From NCBI RefSeq assembly GCF_001194135.2, contig NC_069002.1, positions 293,586 through 357,585 of the forward strand: 64,000 nt of DNA, read 5' to 3'. Shown here piece after piece: positions 29,399 to 57,277 of this stretch. Positions within the stretch are counted from its first letter, which is position 1. The number at the start of each line of letters is the position of its first letter. The DNA comes from Octopus bimaculoides. Its lineage: Eukaryota. The notes beneath the pieces are model-generated. The model was not told the DNA's origin and made no database searches. It worked only from the letters and a program-made list of their open reading frames with translations. A program made the position numbers and the translations under genes.

Positions 29399-46020
<16,622 letters not shown>

Positions 46021-46884: not shown

Positions 46885-46957
<73 letters not shown>

Positions 46958-46968
46958 CTGAGAGAAAA

Positions 46969-47575
46969 GTTGGGTACAAGAGGCATGAGATGTGGTGTGC
47001 AAGAGAGATGACTGTGCTTGTACAGTCATGTGATGCGTATGGACGAGGACAGCTGTGTAAAGAAATGCTGTACTCTAATGGAGAGAACCTGTGGAAGAGG
47101 AAGACATGAGATGAGGTGTTGGAGCACGAACTTCAAATGTTCAATCTCATGATGACAAGTGACTGAGACCTTTGGTGAAATGTTGTGCTTGAGAAGACCT
47201 GACAAACCAAATGTGATCGTAGACATGGCTGATGGGAGTGCCGCTGCCTCCGTGAGAAGTGTTGGGCCTCATGGAGGCGGTGGAAGGGGAGCCAAACTTT
47301 TGACAATAAACCCTGTTTGTGTAGACCTATCAGGACAAGGGAGATCGTAGTCGTGGCTAATGCCAGTGTTGCGCAACTGTCACAGAGGAAGCACCCTTCA
47401 CACATTGGGCTTTTATTAAGAGGACCTGTCAAGCCAAGGGAAATCGTAGTCGTGGGACTTGAAAAGCACCGTATCAGTATTGAACCTCGCGGAGGCAGTG
47501 ACAGGTGGCCAAGGGCTTCGGCAATATACCGTGCGTGTTTAGACCAGGCAAGCGAAGTAAGATCGTAGTTGCGAC
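46969..47575 (+). mobile_element. RTE-clade LINE 3' end (degenerate ORF C-terminus plus modular 3' UTR)
   Basis: Degenerate translation resembling RGMRCGVQER-x-L-x-x-Y-x-HVMRMDEDSCVKKC and RKT-x-DEVLEHEL...EKT-x-QTK. Related fragments at ~60395-60505(+) and 61690-61860(-). Confidence 0.7.
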
Positions 47576-47730
47576 ACTTAAAAAGCGGTGCCCCAGCATG
47601 GCCAGTGTCTAATGAGTAAAACAAGTAAAAGGTAATATCTTTATCGTAATTTTCTGTTGTAGGGGAGACAATCTCTGACAGATTTCAGTTTTTAAAACTT
47701 CACATCCACAGAACATGGAGTTTTCTCATC

Positions 47731-47980
47731 TGACGTAATCACATGAATTACGTCACAATAAAATGTCAAAAAAAAAAAGCGCTGCGTTAAAAATTTTTTT
47801 TTTTAATTATTATTCCAGTTAGAAAACTTCATAAAAATAGATTGAAAAAATTCTTTCATTTTTTTTAACCAAGTTTTAAAAAATTACGGAAGAATATTAA
47901 AAAACAAATAATACATTTTAATGTTTTGCAACTTTCAATCCTAGTAATTTTTTCTAAGAAAATATTTCCCATTCGCTGAA
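47731..47980 (+). promoter_or_regulatory. Putative promoter and non-coding exon 1 of orphan gene A
   Basis: TGACGTAAT-CACATGA-ATTACGTCA inverted repeat at 47731-47755; donor GCTGAA|GTAAGT at 47980. Collinear homology with 52218-52454. Confidence 0.6.
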
Positions 47981-48049
47981 GTAAGTTGATTTCTATTAAT
48001 TTGATTTGATTTTATGTAACTGTCGGTGAACAGAAGCGTCGTTGGTTAC

Positions 48050-48900
48050 AGGTTTTCAACGCGCAAAAACCTTGTTTCACACCATTTCTGATGGGAACAG
48101 ACAATAAGAAGGGGAGTGTCTGTTACACGGGGCAGAGAACTTTTCTCCTCTCTGGGACTTCGTTCCAAAAGGAACGGCTTTTTTCTTTTTGCCGATGTTT
48201 TCATACATGTATGTTGTGGTGGGAGTCCATAGGTAAAATTGGTTGAGAATGTGATGCGTGAGATGCATATGGACTGGGGTTCGAATAGAAGCAGAGTCAG
48301 GTCAGTTGCTGTATGACTTTGAGTTAACAACCTCGGATTAATGAGACTAAAGTAGAGGAAACCCATGCGTTTGAATATCTAATTGACCACAACGTCGGTC
48401 AAACCACGTCGAATGAGGTGACTGTTGTTCTGGAAAGAAATGAATATCCAGGTAAATCTTTCAGGGCTCCGATTGGCAGGTTGGTTTTCCTGTGGAGATA
48501 GAGGTTGTGCCTGACACTTATAAATGTCGATGCAAAAGCTAGACGGCGTTCGGAAACATTTTGAGGAACGATTCGAGTTTTTCCATTGGGGTAACGGATA
48601 AGGATAGCGTGGAATGTCTTCAGTACAAGGTGGTTGACTACTCAAGCCTCCAGTTTGAAAATCTACAGATGGGTTATCTTAGCTGGGATACGATTACCGA
48701 AAACTAAACTCAACGTTGCCAGTATAGAAACCCCTTTTTAATATATTTAGGTTCCCAGTCGAAGTAGAGTGTGGAAAGTGAAGTATAACGCTGTCCCTTA
48801 CCAAATTGGAGGAAAGTTGGATACACGGATGCCCACTCATCCAATCGACATTACCTGAACAGGTGCACGGTGTGTCAGGTGTCGGAAGTGATCGCAGAGT
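48050..48900 (-). mobile_element. Possible degenerate LINE endonuclease relic in orphan A intron 1
   Basis: Broken frames with HTATDLTL (cf. S-x-IDL-T-L) and LNILKRG. Weak match. Confidence 0.25.
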
Positions 48901-49114
48901 AAATTGCTCAAAGTGGAAGTCTATTTTAAGTCTGTATTGTGTTGTCAATATATTAAAGACATATAAACACATACGTTTGAGTGAATTAATAATGTTTTAT
49001 TTGTTTATCTTGTTTTGTTTTTAATTTCAGATACAAACTACGAGTGAAAACGACAGCAACAGTAACAACATCAACACCAATAACGAGAAAGAGAAAGACG
49101 TTGGGAAAGCAAAA

Positions 49115-49986
49115 ATGAAATACCGTTCGTTAATGTTTCTTTTGCAATGCGTGACTATTCTTCACTTTGTTACGGCTCAGGATCCAGAAACAGCATCAAA
49201 GGATTTAGCTATCAATACGGGAGCATCAGGTATGTTGTAATTTAGTTTGTTTTGTAAGTTGGATTTGGGAAAAAGTGACCGAAAGAGTGCCGTGAAATTG
49301 CTGTGAGGAGTGGCGTATCCGACGTTTCGGACAGTGTCCTTTCTAAGATTGAAATTACAAGAGGAGAAAAGGGCCGCAGAGTTTTACATCGACTATTTTT
49401 TAAACAACTGGCTGCAAGTGATGCGGAAAGCAAGACAAGGTGAGCTTACATATGTAGACAGAAATTATATGGCGGTTTCAAATGAAACCACCAAGTTAAT
49501 TATTTAGCTTTCCGCATAGTTTGTTAATTATTTAGCTTTCCGCATAGTTTGTTACTTATTATAAAGCTCATCGATATTGTCAGCATCCATACTTCATCTA
49601 AAATAAACCTTTTTTCTTATCTCTCTTCAGATTCGATGAATTATGATAATTGTAGCTACTCAATAATTCCATCAAAACCAACTGTTTCACTACTGCAAGA
49701 CGAAGTAAAACAGATGGTGTTTAATAATGATGTTGAAAAGACGATATTCAAAAAAGTAAAAGAAGACACGACGATAGGAAAGGACGATATAAAACATCCG
49801 GTTGATAGAAAGCACGAAGAAGACCTGGCGACGGCCGAAAAAGAAGACAAAGAGACGATGTTTGGAAAATTCGTCCAGTATATAAAGTCCTGTGCTAGTC
49901 CGGGCAACGCTTCTTTAATTTTCCCTTCTATATACGTCTTGTTTGTTGTTGTCGTGACTGGGCTACAGATGTCCTCCTATTTTTAA
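49115..49986 (+). CDS. Orphan gene A: 156-aa predicted secretory-pathway protein with C-terminal hydrophobic (GPI-like) tail
   Basis: Exon 49031-49229 (acceptor TTTCAG, ATG at 49115, donor CAG|GTATGT) plus exon 49631-49986 (acceptor CTCTTCAG, TAA), joined by a phase-1 intron. Protein: MKYRSLMFLLQCVTILHFVTA-QDPETASKDLAINTGAS|DSMNYDNCS...FGKFVQYIKSCASPGNASLIFPSIYVLFVVVVTGLQMSSYF. An in-frame TAA at 47945 precedes the ATG in the predicted mRNA. Confidence 0.7.
49495..49554. repeat. Perfect 28-bp tandem duplication in orphan A intron 2
   Basis: (GTTAATTATTTAGCTTTCCGCATAGTTT)x2 plus GTTA. Confidence 0.95.
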
Positions 49987-50676
49987 TTCTTGCTTAAATC
50001 GAAGGAAGAAGAAAAAAACTGGTTCAGGAAATTCATAGTTTAAAAGGAAGAATCAACTGGAAACAAGTTTTGGAGAAACAAATAATTGAAGGCGGGAAGT
50101 TTAAAGAACTTCTCTTCATTCTTAGATTCTAAATAAACCTTTCGCTACTCTTTTTTTCTTTTCTTTTTTTTACCACTAACCAAGATATTCTAAATATTCT
50201 TAAGACAAACTGTTTTGGAAAGTTTGTTTTCGTAAAAGTATCTTGGAAATAACTTAAGAAAATTGGAAAACCTTTGCAGAAAAAAATAACAAAACAGTTT
50301 TGAAGTAAATAAAGTTGTTCTCTTTGTTGTTGATGTTGTTATTTCGCTGGCAAAAGGTGGGATGGAATCCAATTGTTATAACATTATTACACTACCACAT
50401 TACCTCTGCCTTATTACATATCCACCTTTTATTCTATTACACTATTTACTACTCATCTACCCCATCATACTACCGCCACTCCATTACATATTTAGAAAAA
50501 TACGTCCGCCACCTGTTTTCTGCTTTTAAGTGCAATGTAACGATATACTGCAATTGGTTCAAAAGACCAGCAATTCTTGTATCGGAAGAAACGAATTTTG
50601 ACGAGAAGGCTCCAATTTGTGAAGAAGTCTGATATTTTTTAAGTAACGAATTTTGAAGAGAGGGCTCTTATTCTTT

Positions 50677-51000
50677 TATCAGGGGTCATCAAAATGTAAC
50701 GACAATTTAACGAAGAAGTTTGCATCAGAGAAATGACGGAAGAACAATGTCAGTACGAATGTTGTTAGGGGCTAAAGCCTTTTTCTGTAAGTATTTGATA
50801 AGACCACGATGCCGCAGTTTGTCGATTTGCAAGAGGAGTCGCTACTTTAGAAGGCTTCTTTGAACTGTCAGATGTCAGTTGACCTGGAAAGAAACAATGC
50901 AGTTATTAATAAGAAGTGTTGAAATGAATGCATGCATGATTTCACAGCTCTAGCATCACTCCTTCATAGTCATCCTGAGAACTTTCCGACCGACCCTCGT
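50677..51000. mobile_element. Mariner-like MITE remnants between the two orphan genes
   Basis: Terminal-repeat-like ends TATCAGGGGTCATCAAAATGT and ACTTTCCGACCGACCCTCGT. Confidence 0.4.
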
Positions 51001-51788
51001 CAATTATTATGTTGTTACAATGTTGAAGATAAATGTAATATTAGTCGTTACAATATATAATAAATTTACTACTTCATCGGGTTATTTATTTGTGTGTACA
51101 CAGCTTGTTTGTAGATACAGGAGAAATTTGTCTCTGGTTCCATGGTTCATTGAATATGTTAGATTAGATTCCCCGTGGCTGCTAGGGAGAAAGACATAGG
51201 AAAAGGAACGTTTGTAGTTAGAGGGGGAAAAGAGGTTTACCTTCGCACACATTATTATATAGCATAGTGACCAGAGTTACTCTCAGTCCAGAGACGATTG
51301 ACCAAGGAGAGGAAGACAGATGTTTGCTTGAGTTTTTTTTAAAATTTTATATATAACTTTCTGGTTACTGAATTAGGTCAGCTAAAACAATAGGGTTCTT
51401 CGTCCTTGATCAGAACTGACCACAAGAAAGATCAAGAGGTCAAATTTTTCTCATTAATCTCTGAGTGCAATAAGGCTAAGACAAAAGACCGAGGAATTGA
51501 CAATGTATATAAATGTGGATTTGGTTTCGAATTCCAGCTTAGCTATACTGTAGCTGTTCGCTACACCTACATATATGAGTAAGCGCATATACATTCACAT
51601 ACATATGCACATAGAAAACAACACACTCACATACCTGCACACACACGCACAAATACTTCACGCACACACACACACACAAATATACACAAACATACACGCA
51701 TGCACATACACAAATAGTTTCATCAACAGTACTGCTACTGCTACCACCACCGCTGTCCCCCCACCCCTCCATTATCACTACTGGATCA

Positions 51789-52169
51789 TTTCTGTTTAAC
51801 TCACAGTTTTTGAAATTTCAAAATTAAGTGAAAATTTTCAAATGTTGTATACTGATGTAATTTTTCACGCTGAATTTAATTTTGTTATTCCTTTGTTCCA
51901 GAAAAATCTTAGAAAAATGTCACAGAAGTTTAAAATGTGATTATTTTAACCCAATTAAAATACAGGATTTGGAAGCTGACATTTTCTGCTAAAACTACCC
52001 AAAATATGCAGATTTTAAAAGTTATTCACTTTTATTCATTAATTTGTGGCAAAAACGAATTTTTCTTTCCATAATTAGCCTACAAAACTACACCGATGCA
52101 CCAAGTTTGAAATCAATTGGAACAAAATTAAGAGAATTGAAATTAAGAATTCTGTGAGCCAAACAGAAA
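51789..52169. mobile_element. MITE-like element with 18-bp terminal inverted repeats
   Basis: TTTCTGTTTAACTCACAG at 51789-51806 versus CTGTGAGCCAAACAGAAA at 52152-52169 (16/18 match); AT-rich non-coding interior. Confidence 0.65.
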
Positions 52170-52217
52170 ATACTACTGCTGCTGCTGATGCCGACTCATT
52201 GAACCCAACAGAAAATA

Positions 52218-52454
52218 TGACGTGATGGAATATAAAACTACGTCACAATCCGAAATCGCACCAAACGCAGGTTTCTATCTCACCAACTCCATAAAAAAAA
52301 AAATTCCCCCAAAACAGAGAAGGTTGTAAAAAATCTTTCGATTTTTAACAAAGCTTTAAAAATTACGAAAGTTATTTTGAAAGTATAACCTTAATCTTCT
52401 GTGATAATTCGAACTTTAAACAACATTCTCAAACAATTTTTACAATAAGCTGAG
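52218..52454 (+). promoter_or_regulatory. Putative promoter and non-coding exon 1 of orphan gene B
   Basis: TGACGT (52218-52223) and ACGTCA (52240-52245) flank TATAAAA (52231-52237); donor GCTGAG|GTAAGT at 52454. Homologous to 47731-47980. Confidence 0.6.
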
Positions 52455-54309
52455 GTAAGTTCATTAAATGTTCTGATAAAAATAGAGTCATTTATTATTA
52501 TTCTGTATATGTAAATATTTTTTTAAACATTTACTAAAGACAGGCAAACTTATTAAAAGATTTTCAAAAATGAATTTACACTTTAGCTAACTTCAATTTG
52601 TGATTATAAACCTAAATAATGTATTTGCATTTCTTTAATCTAATCTACTTTTGAAATAATTCAAACTTGTTTTCTTTTTGTTGTTTGTTTAGCCCTAGGT
52701 CAGACCAAATACGTATGATCAATGGCGTTTTAGTATAATTTCTTTTTTTTTGTTTAGAGAGAGAGACATAAAAACAGCTAGGACTACATCATTCATTGTC
52801 TTTCCTATTTTGTCGGGGGGTAGACTTCATCCGTCGTCCAGTTTAACACTAACCATCTTTGGTGTCTTTGAGGATAATTTTGCCGTTTCCTCTCATTAAT
52901 ATTGGAGCTTCTTTCTTCAAACTCTGATTGACGGACTTCGGAATAACTATCACTGCCCCAGGGAAATGGGAAGTTGTTTCCTTCTGTAAAAGATTTTTTT
53001 TTTTTATTCCTCAAGAACTTAATTTTTTACATTTTTGTCCCCCTCCCCAATTTCTACGATTACACCCAACGTTTACTATTGGGCGCTGTCCCCTCTGATT
53101 GAATAAATATAAAAAAAAACCCCAGAGAAATGGAAATCTATGATTTTCATTGGTATTTGAAATTAGACATCGGTCCAGTTGGTTACAACGCCTAACAGAA
53201 ATGTCTCGACCCACTTTCTGTTTGTTTTCTTCGGACATGGCACAAGACTTCAGTTCAGAATGTACATAATTGAGAAGAGATATCGTGTGCGATCTCATCC
53301 GATGTCAGTTAAAAGTCGGCTTTATCTGGTAACGAAATGAAGTCGAACGAACTTTTTAATCTTTTACTGTCAAACTTTTAAGTTTCGAAGTTGTTTACGT
53401 ATCGAAGAAACGGTTGAAACTCAAGGAAACGCCTGTAAGAATCGAAGAGGAAATCATAATTAACAACATTGATCTAATTGAAACGAATTAATTCCTTCAG
53501 GACATTTATACCTTGATTATTGGTATTGAAAGTATTCTATTAAATGTCTTACATTGTTTTGATTAAATAATTAATTGTTACTGTATTGAACGAATGCGTT
53601 TGGTGAATAGTCAGACTTGTTCGGAAAGGAAAGCTTCGTGGTGGTCAATATCAGTGGTTGTGAACTGAGGTTTGCATAACTCTTGGGGGGTGGGGATCTA
53701 GATAAGCTTTTGCTGTTAAAATTTATCTGCAATTTATTTATATGTCTATTTACTTTTTTTTTTATTTTCAAATCCTTAAACTGCATACAAACTGGAATAA
53801 GTAATTTTCTTTACAATAAACTTTTTAGTAGTTTTTGTCGAAGATTTTCCATTTTGAAGCTGATTTAATCTATAGATTATTTTTAAAATCAGCTTTGAGA
53901 TTTGAAACTCTATTATTCAATGTGGAAACTTGATTTACAAAGTATATGAAGTGGTCCACCTCATTCAACACTCATCAGAGTGAAATAAGAAGACAAAACA
54001 AAAAGTGAAACAGAAACGAAGAAATGGTAATTCCGTAGAAATAAACTGCAAAGTAAATGAATAATTTAAATAAAATGAAATAAATTAAAAATAAGGAAAA
54101 ATCTTTTTAATTTGGCAAAAGACGGATCTGTTCTAAAAGGAAACCCACGTAAACCGAGGGACAAGTGTACGTTTATATTTTTTGTCTGTTTTTGAATTTA
54201 ATTAATGGTTTTGCTCCTTTCACATTTCAGACAAAAAAAAACACCAACATCTAGAGCAACAACAACAACAAAAACTACAAGAACCACAACAGCAATAAGA
54301 ACAACAAAT

Positions 54310-55427
54310 ATGAAGTTCCACACAGTATTGTTTCTCAGTTTATTTATGTCTACATTTGATCTTATCACGGCTCATGATACAGCAGCTTCATCATTATTGC
54401 CATCATCATCATCACCAGCACAAGCACCACCACCACCAGTAGCAGCAGCAGCAGCATTAGCAGCATCTACTCCAGACATTATCATGCTCGACACCAACCA
54501 GAACGCATCAGGTTTGTTATAGTTTCATATGTTATAAGTCAGGGCTAAATATTTTGTCAGAAATCTGAGAGAAGTCTAAATATAAAAATGTCAAAATGGT
54601 TAATGGGTTCAATTTTTGAAAATAATGCCCAGTCTATGTCTTTGTTTTCTTAAATTTTTCTTTGTGAGTATTTTTTGAAGGCAACTGCTATTTCTAGCAG
54701 GTTGGACAACCACATAGTTTTTCTTGTTGGGTTAAAAGGAATCCGTAGATTATATAACAATGTGGAATATAAAACTGTTAGTAGGATGGAGGCTAATGCC
54801 GAGTTCCTTGGGTGTTGTCCAATGTCAATCTCATTATGTCTTTGCATATCACTAGCCATGGAACTCCCAAGACTACATGGAGAAGGTGAGGCCTGTTGCC
54901 ATTCTTTGGTGCCTGGAGATGCTTCAGAATATTCTGGGTGGGCACTAATTTGTAATAATGCTAAAGTGGAGTTTCGTAATAAGTGTATCACTGTAAATCT
55001 GAGGGTACACCATTGAATAGGGAGAAGTGTGGGAGGGGGGAGTAGTACTGTCCAGTGCACACCCTTAGTGATGGGCATGGTTGGCAGCAGATTGGCCTCC
55101 TGGCAATCGTAACTTGGCCCCTTTTCTATAAGTAGTGAAAGTGTATATAATCCAATTTGATTTTCTGTTTCGATTGTTGCAGCATTTTTTGTTGTGATCC
55201 GTGTTTGATGTCTCTCTTTATTTCTTTTGCCAGATCCGCTTGTCAACGATGAACCAGCACCGCAGGCTAAGCCTGGTATCATTAAGAGTTTGGGAAACAG
55301 TATAAAATCGTACTTGGTTCGAATAAGAAAAGCAGTTTTCAGCCATTCTCTCATCATTGGTCCAGTTGTTGTCACTGCTTTCGTTGTTGGGGTAACAGTG
55401 TTAACGCACCGGAACCGTTTCTCGTAA
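54310..55427 (+). CDS. Orphan gene B: 131-aa predicted membrane-anchored protein, paralog of gene A
   Basis: Exon 54231-54511 (acceptor TTTCAG, ATG at 54310, donor CAG|GTTTGT) plus exon 55234-55427 (acceptor TTTGCCAG, TAA), joined by a phase-1 intron. Protein: MKFHTVLFLSLFMSTFDLITA-HDTAASS...DTNQNAS|DPLVNDE...IIKSLGNSIKSYLVRIRKAVFSHSLIIGPVVVTAFVVGVTVLTHRNRFS. An in-frame TAA at 52417 precedes the ATG. Confidence 0.7.
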
Positions 55428-57198
55428 CCGATTCCTCGCTCTATGCAGGCGTTATCATATTTTATTAAGAATCTTTAAATTCACTCTTAAATAGAAGGAA
55501 CACAAGATTCAGAATTTGGAGAATTTTTTTGCCAAGTGACAAGGCATTTTTATAGAAGAGAAGCATAAACGAAAATGGCAAGTTTGAAGAAGTTCCGTTC
55601 TTTCTTGTTTAGAGATAAAAAAAAAAAACCCCACAAAAACCTTTAACTGCTTTCAATGGTGACTAAGATAAGTTATAAAGACTAATTACTCTGGTTAATT
55701 TGTTATAAAAACGTCTTGGATATAACCTGTGGAATTTTTGAAAGCTGCACCAAAGAAAAATTGAAAAATTTTCTCTTCACAAAAATAAATGCATTTTTTC
55801 CTTTTTTTTTTCTCATTGCTTTTTGTTGCTATCAATAAGAGTTCTGACCTAAGACATTCCGGCAATGACTACTTGCTCATTTGCTTTATCGTAATTCATC
55901 ATAAGTTTTTGATGTTAACTAAACGGCCCATTAACGATTTTTGGCACTTTAGATTGATGCTGTTGTTGTTGTTGTTGTTGCAGGGTTTTTGTTTAACCTC
56001 AGTTCAACGTTCACTGAGTTGGGTCTGGAGTTAAAAACTAACCAATGCTCTCTTTCTGTCTGTCGTATTATCTAGGAGGGAAATTTGGCAGTTTTGTCCA
56101 TCAAGCCGAATGGCATGGATTCGTAAGGGAACTCTAAAACTAAATCATCATGACAATACATTACAAGGGTGGATCTTTGAATTACAAGCACAATCAAGTC
56201 GAAGAAAATCAGTACTCCAGTCGATTCGTTCGACTAAAATTGCTCAAGGCGGTGCCCCAGCATGGCCGCCGTCTAATGATTGAAACAAGCAAAATATAAA
56301 AGATAAACATACTACTACCGAGGATCGAAACTGTAGTGTAGTCATAGATTTCGGCGATGTTATCTCCATCTTTAGCATACGGGAGATATTTACTAATGGG
56401 TAGTCTATCGAAAGAATGCCTTGTTTGTTTGTGTTATTTTATTTATAAAGAAAGCATGATTATGGCGGAGGAACACCCTAAAAGAGTCTAGTAAGTCTTG
56501 ATAGAAAAGGGTCGTCGACCGGCTAGAAATAACAAGATATGTCCCGGACCAAACCCTTACCGTCTCTAAAAATAATAAAAAAAACAAAACAAGTAGATTG
56601 TCGAGACTTGAGTGTCTCTCGAACTTGCATCAGCACTGACCAAAATCTAAAGAAAAATAATAATTATGGAAAGGTTGCTAAATTATCTTAATTTTAATAT
56701 CTACAATAGCAACAAGAACAGCAACAATAACAACAGTAGCAGCAACAACAGCACTTTTGAAATGTCCTGGATGGGAAAGAGAGGGAGAAAGTAAAGAAGA
56801 AAGAAGAGAAAATAAGTGAGAGAGAGACAGACATTGTAAAAGAGAGAAAGTGACGACGACGAGAAAAAAGAGAGGGTGATAAAGGGAGGAGACGAGAGAG
56901 AGAGTGAGAGAAATGAATGGCAGAAATAAGCAATGAGAGTAAGAAAGTAAAAAAAGACGAGTGTTTGAAACATCATTTAAAAGAGAGAGAGAGAGAGGAA
57001 GGTAGAGATACTAATGGGAGTGAGGAGGAGGAGGGGGAGTTGGTGAATGAAGGAGAATGGTGGAAGGGGGAAGCTATCATGGAAGGCGTGACTGAGTAGG
57101 AGTTTATTCATTGAAGAAGGTGCAGCGAAGAAGATTGGTCAGCAATGAAAGCGAAAACCTATGAAGTATAGCATTAACGGAGCGTCGTTATCATGGCT

Positions 57199-57270
57199 TC
57201 CCATGTGGTCTAGTGGTTAGGATTCCTGGCTTTCACCCAGGCGGCCCGGGTTCGATTCCCGGCATGGGAA
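57199..57270 (+). tRNA. tRNA-Glu (anticodon TTC)
   Basis: TCCCATG acceptor stem pairs with CATGGGA, followed by discriminator A. A box TGGTCTAGTGG, anticodon arm CCTGG-CTTTCAC-CCAGG, B box GGTTCGATTCC. 72 nt, with canonical eukaryotic tRNA-Glu sequence. Confidence 0.97.
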
Positions 57271-57277
57271 CGTCTAC

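Follow-up and report, generated by a model that had tools for sequence, protein, structure and literature searches.

What do two small spliced genes that lie side by side on an octopus chromosome encode, and how are they related to each other and to known proteins? The window analysed here is a stretch of 64,000 nucleotides (nt) from Octopus bimaculoides (NCBI RefSeq assembly GCF_001194135.2, contig NC_069002.1, positions 293,586 to 357,585, forward strand). The pair, hereafter gene A and gene B, occupies positions 47,731 to 55,427 of the window. An earlier note, made from the letters of this DNA, had described it as a tandem pair of three-exon genes for small membrane-anchored proteins without a recognisable family. 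We read the regions 47500-50100 and 52100-55700 of the window closely and compared them with the corresponding loci of other octopuses. With moderate confidence, we conclude that A and B are genuine coding genes which arose by tandem duplication and are present in public annotation, and that their products are most likely type I single-pass membrane glycoproteins, restricted to the genus or lineage, whose core is a juxtamembrane helix together with a transmembrane (TM) span.

Gene models, orthologues and the origin of the pair

Splicing of the exons by script reproduced the tandem three-exon pair of the earlier note exactly: each of the four junctions (47980/49031, 49229/49631, 52454/54231 and 54511/55234) was as described, and the spliced products measured 156 amino acids (aa) for A and 131 aa for B (Table 1). 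The six-frame open reading frame (ORF) track alone misses both genes. All their acceptors have the form (t)cag/ and all their donors the form /gt, where the slash marks the exon border. Intron 2 is in phase 1 in A as in B and directly follows a common heptamer, GCATCAG. The leaders at the start of exon 2 lack an ATG, have an A content of 52-62% and place an A at position -3 of the start codon. In the non-coding exon 1 of either gene, nothing but the donor and the final ~140 nt is conspicuous. The 5' ends of these exons (47731 in A, about 52200 in B) are not fixed by the sequence, and the start at 47731 adopted in the note was arbitrary.

The same structure is preserved in other octopuses. The O. 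sinensis orthologues, LOC118767561 and LOC118767532, share 82% and 86% aa identity with A and B, respectively, and O. vulgaris (orthologue accession CAI9739163.1) has deposited models of 186 aa for A and 132 aa for B. In the O. sinensis and O. vulgaris loci the six exons follow one another in the same order with 86-97% nt identity, and every splice site is kept; exon 3 of gene B reaches 96-97% nt identity against both species. Exon 3 of gene A is also present in two Logan contigs (SRR11869390 and SRR11869391; L004), which represent genomic DNA of a more distant, fourth octopus. Its acceptor and frame are intact there, at 83% nt identity.

Contrary to the note, which had called the genes unrecognised, both are already annotated in RefSeq as uncharacterized proteins in O. 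bimaculoides and O. sinensis, and gene models of the pair are present in O. vulgaris too. The protein of gene A is identical over its full length (100%) to XP_014783512.1 (LOC106878719 isoform X2; also UniProt A0A0L8G6X0) from Octopus bimaculoides, and that of gene B matches XP_014783514.1 ('uncharacterized protein LOC106878720 [Octopus bimaculoides]') from end to end, also at 100% identity. These public entries state no function, family or paralogy, and a literature search by locus, protein and UniProt identifiers and by Sequence Read Archive (SRA) runs found no paper. As gene models, then, A and B add nothing to RefSeq and UniProt, which already have them. Added beyond the annotation are the paralogy of the two loci, the lack of detectable relatives outside Octopus, the constrained signal peptide and C-terminal module, the common promoter of cAMP response element (CRE) type and the conserved non-coding exon 1.

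RefSeq also lists a longer isoform of gene A, X1 (XP_014783511.1), of 188 aa. It starts from an alternative first coding exon inside intron 1 (Table 1), begins MNIQ-IQTTSEND and reads through the CAA-rich leader. Neither its ATG nor its donor is disrupted in O. sinensis or O. vulgaris, and the 186-aa model of O. vulgaris shares this start. The 32 additional N-terminal residues of X1 would bury the signal peptide of A.

Table 1. Features of the two genes, in window coordinates; a slash marks a splice border or a predicted cleavage site.
Feature	Position	Strand	Description
Gene A promoter element	47731..47759	+	paired inverted CRE-like half sites, TGACGTAAT...ATTACGTCACAAT
Gene A exon 1, 3' block	47839..47980	+	98.6% identical to O. 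sinensis; upstream and intron flanks 74-83%
Gene A exon 1, end	47980	+	donor GCTGAA/gtaagt; non-coding
Gene A alternative first coding exon	48441..48452	+	ATGAATATCCAG/gtaaat, inside intron 1; used by RefSeq isoform X1
Gene A exon 2	49031..49229	+	acceptor tttcag/ATAC; donor GCATCAG/gtatgt, phase 1; splice sites kept in orthologues; 84-nt A/C-rich leader without ATG, coding sequence from 49115, predicted signal peptide MKYRSLMFLLQCVTILHFVTA/QD... to GAS
Gene A exon 3	49631..49986	+	charged variable putative ectodomain, then conserved C-terminal module ETMFGKFVQYIKSCASPGNAS-LIFPSIYVLFVVVVTGL-QMSSYF; stop TAA 49984-49986
Gene B promoter element	52218..52249	+	paired CRE-like half sites, TGACGTGAT...CTACGTCACAAT
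Gene B exon 1, 3' block	52321..52454	+	95.6% identical to O. sinensis; flanks 80-85%, with 80-81% on either side of the block
Gene B exon 1, end	52454	+	donor GCTGAG/gtaagt; non-coding
Gene B exon 2	54231..54511	+	donor GCATCAG/gtttgt, phase 1; splice sites kept in orthologues; 79-nt CAA-rich leader without ATG, coding sequence from 54310, predicted signal peptide MKFHTVLFLSLFMSTFDLITA/HD, then Ser/Pro/Ala low-complexity stretch and NAS sequon
Gene B exon 3	55234..55427	+	basic amphipathic juxtamembrane helix (GIIKSLGNSIKSYLVRIRKAVF), putative TM span (LIIGPVVVTAFVVGVTVL), short basic tail THRNRFS; stop TAA 55425-55427

The two genes have the same three-exon plan and the same strand and lie 2.2 kb apart, and the claim that they are tandem paralogues is supported by the DNA of exon 1, the promoter pair, the signal peptides, the exon plan and the intron phase. 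Local alignment of exon 1 of A with exon 1 of B gave a score of 35, as compared with 14.2 ± 2.2 (maximum 25) for dinucleotide shuffles (z = 9.6); none of 222 other pieces of the window scored above 21. An alignment of six exon 1 sequences shows common blocks up to the shared donor GCTGAR/GTAAGTT. At the protein level, BLASTP aligned the signal peptides only (E = 0.011), and their similarity reached p of about 5e-4 in composition-preserving shuffles. The middles do not align (p = 0.55 in shuffles), and in tblastn against the window the TM match was no better than background (E = 5-20). The strongest evidence for paralogy is therefore at the DNA level. Together with the shared exon plan, intron phase, strand and adjacency, a tandem duplication that predates the split of these Octopus species is well supported. 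No third paralogue was found in the 64-kb window by a lax tblastn search.

Coding constraint and the putative membrane product

The ratio of non-synonymous to synonymous substitution rates (dN/dS) was calculated by the Nei-Gojobori method for O. bimaculoides against O. sinensis and O. vulgaris. For gene A it was 0.05-0.11 in the signal peptide, 0.49-0.55 in the middle and 0.11-0.14 in the C-terminal module of 44 residues. Against the more distant octopus, the C-terminus of A carried 10 synonymous and 4 non-synonymous changes (dN/dS 0.09), and the value for its middle was 0.55. For gene B, the values were 0.23 in the signal peptide, about 1.8-2.0 in the middle, where sites are few (2 synonymous and 9-10 non-synonymous changes), and 0.08 in the C-terminal module of 52 residues. 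The hydrophobic span of A, LIFPSIYVLFVVVVTGLQMSSYF, is identical in 4/4 octopus species. At the nucleotide level, the C-terminal coding sequences of A and B retain 95.6-95.9% identity versus about 80-86% in introns and intergenic DNA; the last 135 coding nt of A are 95.6% identical to O. sinensis and the middle of this gene is 86.9% identical. These data show real coding constraint that is regional, with constrained ends and relaxed middles. The label 'fast-evolving', which the note had given to the whole family, thus fits the ectodomain middles but not the C-terminal modules, which are among the most conserved sequence of the locus.

The description of the products as small membrane-anchored proteins agrees with hydropathy and inspection insofar as each has a signal-peptide-like N-terminus and one C-terminal hydrophobic anchor. 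Inspection of the signal peptide suggests MKYR as n-region, SLMFLLQCVTILHF as h-region and VTA/Q as cleavage site in A; for B the corresponding strings are MKFH, TVLFLSLFMSTF and (D)LITA/H. The Kyte-Doolittle scale places one C-terminal hydrophobic span in each protein (about 132-150 in A and 106-124 in B), and, signal peptides aside, 19-residue windows above 1.4 occur only at 127-156 in A and 100-127 in B. Six residues follow the span in A and seven in B. The flank is basic in B (HRNR) and uncharged in A, so only B has a stop-transfer flank. N-x-S sequons are conserved at N45 and N131 in A and at N65 in B. AlphaFold2 (AF2) models of A and B both contain a helix directly before the C-terminal TM helix; in B the two helices run from 81 to 105 and from 109 to 130. 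The 'amphipathic IKS helix' of the note is evident in B, where residues 83-100 have a hydrophobic moment of 0.58, and only weakly developed in A, and MAFFT left the IKS motifs of the two proteins unaligned.

A membrane protein of the following kind would accommodate these features. Cleavage of the signal peptide is predicted after VTA in A and after ITA in B, which would leave a poorly constrained ectodomain, probably disordered and glycosylated, of charged character in A and of Ser/Pro/Ala mucin-like character in B. The C-terminal module would consist of a membrane-proximal helix and a single hydrophobic span, followed by hardly any cytosolic tail. Because selection keeps the exact sequence of helix and TM span while the ectodomain drifts, the proteins would be expected to act in or at the membrane, where they would associate laterally with another membrane protein as partner, like small single-pass accessory subunits, and the ectodomain would serve as a variable spacer or coat. 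The data show gene structure, orthology, paralogy, regional coding constraint and the lack of detectable relatives; we infer signal-peptide cleavage, topology, glycosylation, partner binding and the CRE-dependent co-regulation of A and B discussed below.

Several points weigh against this reading. The RefSeq models of both genes are computational, and cleavage and topology were assigned by inspection and hydropathy. The confidence of the AF2 models is low (mean predicted local distance difference test scores, pLDDT, of 41 and 50), which makes their helices only suggestive. The similarity between the TM and C-terminal regions of A and B is by itself marginal (p = 0.01-0.04 in composition-preserving shuffles), and what would speak for a binding partner is the pattern of conservation alone. 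Moreover, a signal peptide combined with a terminal hydrophobic segment 6-7 residues from the end, as seen in A and B, is the classic plan of a precursor for a glycosylphosphatidylinositol (GPI) anchor. In A, inspection finds each part of such a signal: a plausible omega region (C126-A127-S128), a spacer (PGNAS), a hydrophobic run of 17 residues and an uncharged end, QMSSYF.

The main rival explanation accordingly holds that A and B are GPI-anchored surface glycoproteins, whose C-terminal hydrophobic segment is an attachment signal cleaved in the endoplasmic reticulum and whose mature form is a lipid-anchored, disordered or mucin-like ectodomain. The GPI signal of Thy-1 resembles the C-terminus of A, and it is at least for A that such an anchor is possible. 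We nevertheless regard it as unlikely on the following evidence. Four octopus species share the hydrophobic segment of A without a single difference (100% identity), and none of the 4 non-synonymous changes of the module falls within it. A signal that is discarded, and for which hydrophobicity suffices, would be expected to vary more. The N131-A-S sequon is conserved although cleavage of this kind would remove it. In B, the hydrophobic run follows the last small residues without a spacer, and the C-terminus is the basic, stop-transfer-like THRNRFS.

First exons, upstream elements and neighbouring sequence

The most conserved segment of each gene is the last ~140 nt of its non-coding exon 1. 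Paired CRE-like sites are found about 200-250 bp upstream of the exon 1 donor. The pattern TGACGT-N(4-30)-ACGTCACAAT occurs in the 64-kb window only at the two promoter elements of Table 1, with 0 occurrences expected by chance. O. sinensis and O. vulgaris retain the pair of gene A, with a second site that is a perfect palindrome, TGACGTCA; for gene B it is the first site that forms the perfect TGACGTCA in these two species. The exon 1 blocks showed no excess of RNA folding (z = -1.2 in A and -0.2 in B), and Rfam gave no match within genes A or B. A common upstream ORF in exon 1 was considered and rejected: A has one of 7 codons (ATG at 47921), and B lacks an ATG downstream of its CRE pair. 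The exon 1 block may be a core promoter with a short 5' untranslated region, driven by basic leucine zipper (bZIP) factors of CREB/ATF type; if so, the transcribed exon 1 would be shorter than the earlier note assumed.

Combined with the proposed membrane product, these elements invite a bolder proposal, which we hold to be doubtful. A and B would be the founding pair of an Octopus-restricted family of micro-membrane proteins, in which the invariant helix and TM span dock on and regulate a conserved membrane complex (channel, transporter or receptor) while the ectodomains are free to diverge. The near-invariant exon 1 block and the dual CRE sites would then be a dedicated regulatory cassette that was duplicated with the gene and that imposes the same stimulus-dependent expression on both copies.

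The deposited 186-aa A model of O. vulgaris (L003 10001-28681, OX597835.1) is a chimera: an internal GT in exon 3 of A is joined to an internal acceptor in exon 1 of B, the donor of B exon 1 is then used, and the model ends in exon 2 of B, so that its tail, ...FKNYESYFENITFIFCDNSNFKHLSQTIFYNKLR, is B exon 1 translated. Taken at face value, such a model would make the locus one complex transcription unit with read-through or chimeric A-B transcripts as the real product. This is very improbable. Canonical splicing of the O. vulgaris genome yields an intact A of 156 aa, alongside the separate 132-aa model of B; gene B owns a CRE pair and a conserved exon 1 block; and RefSeq calls two genes in two species. 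In addition, the chimeric tail lacks coding conservation, because the same frame in exon 1 of A stops at the donor.

In the orthologous loci, the upstream neighbour of the pair is a gene for a 938-aa SNF2/Helicase_C protein and the downstream neighbour is a DNA_pol_A_exo1 gene; exons of the SNF2 gene were located in the window at 37215-37526 and 40508-40801. The flanks named SMARCAD1 and EXD2 in the note fit these assignments, as an SNF2-family helicase gene and a DNA_pol_A_exo1 3'-5' exonuclease gene are consistent with both names. Between gene B and the exonuclease gene lies a tRNA-Glu(UUC) gene (57199-57271, + strand; Rfam, 66.5 bits), which is syntenic in O. sinensis (L002 16197-16269) and O. 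vulgaris (L003 34996-35068).

Several repeats were seen in and around the pair. Intron 2 of gene A contains 2.4 copies of a 28-nt unit (GTTAATTATTTAGCTTTCCGCATAGTTT) at 49495-49560. Identity to O. sinensis is 96% over the last 108 nt of this intron (49523-49630) and 81% over the rest of it. A short interspersed repeat upstream of A (47133-47624) recurs downstream of B (56212-56301). The latter piece also matches, at 81-82%, the region orthologous to about 47585 in L001 and L003, and the ORFs across both copies have the residues GHAGAP in common. Upstream of the first copy, at 46903-46954, there is a perfect (TA)26 microsatellite. It explains the sub-threshold Rfam matches to 'mir-297' and 'mir-1277', which were rejected as false positives.

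Family searches and relation to known systems

The statement that no family can be recognised held up in Pfam, profile and PDB searches. Pfam returned nothing for A, and a PDB profile search gave no meaningful match. The A-family profile retrieved four Octopus proteins only, even at E <= 10, from a word-indexed collection of 5.8 billion proteins. The B-family profile, run with HMMER against all 1.84 billion representatives, retrieved itself and one bacterial protein, with no eukaryotic relative. The bacterial match (E = 2e-4), to a T/A/S-rich repeat protein of 1252 aa, was discarded as spurious; it covers the signal peptide and the low-complexity part of B. A and B thus appear to form an orphan family with relatives found only in O. 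bimaculoides, O. sinensis, O. vulgaris and the octopus reads SRR11869390 and SRR11869391, unannotated cephalopod genomes lying outside the DNA-level search.

A single Pfam match would, if real, connect B with a known family. The B protein of O. bimaculoides matches PF06679 (DUF1180/FAM174) with 14.7 bits (E = 0.044), over a stretch from the signal peptide to the TM span. FAM174/DUF1180 proteins resemble the predicted products of A and B in overall plan, with a signal peptide, a low-complexity ectodomain, a single TM span and about 130-190 aa, and the two octopus proteins could on these grounds be highly diverged members. We consider this still less credible than a single transcription unit. 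The score is far under the gathering cut-off of 27.7. The match recurs neither in any A protein nor in the B orthologues of O. sinensis and O. vulgaris, whose own matches are just as weak and to unrelated models, and the HMMER search with the B profile brought up no eukaryotic relative. The match also ends at position 123 of 167, and B lacks the cytoplasmic tail to which the last ~45 model positions (about 124-167) correspond. The octopus proteins differ from FAM174/DUF1180 in that there is no reproducible similarity, in having no cytoplasmic tail and in carrying a conserved extracellular juxtamembrane helix.

The least probable explanation, that A and B are chance ORFs in long non-coding RNAs or decaying pseudogenes, or that the real gene is an antisense ORF of 241 aa (54650-55375, - strand) over exon 3 and intron 2 of B, could appeal to the small products, the homologues in one genus only, the low complexity in B and the antisense overlap with B exon 3, but it is largely refuted by frames, starts, stops and splice sites that are intact in 3-4 species, by dN/dS of 0.05-0.14 in A (signal peptide and C-terminus) and of 0.08 in the C-terminus of B, regions that do carry synonymous changes, and by the stops and frameshifts that break the antisense frame, a chance ORF, in both the O. 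sinensis and the O. vulgaris locus.

A and B lend themselves to the study of how small, lineage-restricted membrane proteins originate and diversify in cephalopods. They offer testable hypotheses about a TM versus a GPI anchor, about a membrane partner and about CRE-dependent expression. Given the present evidence, the pair has no bearing on any long-standing question, and its remaining interest is modest.

The proposed products may be set beside three groups of known proteins. Thy-1, CD24 and CD52 are small glycoproteins or mucins with GPI anchors. They resemble the predicted products of A and B in the signal peptide, the hydrophobic segment at the extreme C-terminus and a short glycosylated or low-complexity ectodomain, but the hydrophobic tail of A and B is strongly constrained, and B has a basic end and no spacer. 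FXYD and KCNE proteins are small single-pass accessory or regulatory subunits. The likeness to them is one of analogy only: small size, one TM span, and constraint on the TM and juxtamembrane segments and not on a folded ectodomain. There is no sequence relationship and no Pfam match of A or B to either family, and the FXYD motif is not found: the nearest string, MNYD in A of O. bimaculoides, corresponds to MNCD in both O. sinensis and O. vulgaris, and B has none. Finally, the O. bimaculoides genome study of Albertin et al. (2015, Nature 524:220) reportedly described taxonomically restricted ('cephalopod-specific' or 'octopus-specific') genes. A and B resemble such genes in being short, lineage-restricted and devoid of Pfam domains, with no homologue beyond the clade; what differs is that for this one pair an internal anatomy is now added, made up of the paralogy of the two genes, the constraint on their C-terminal module and the conservation of their 5' exon.

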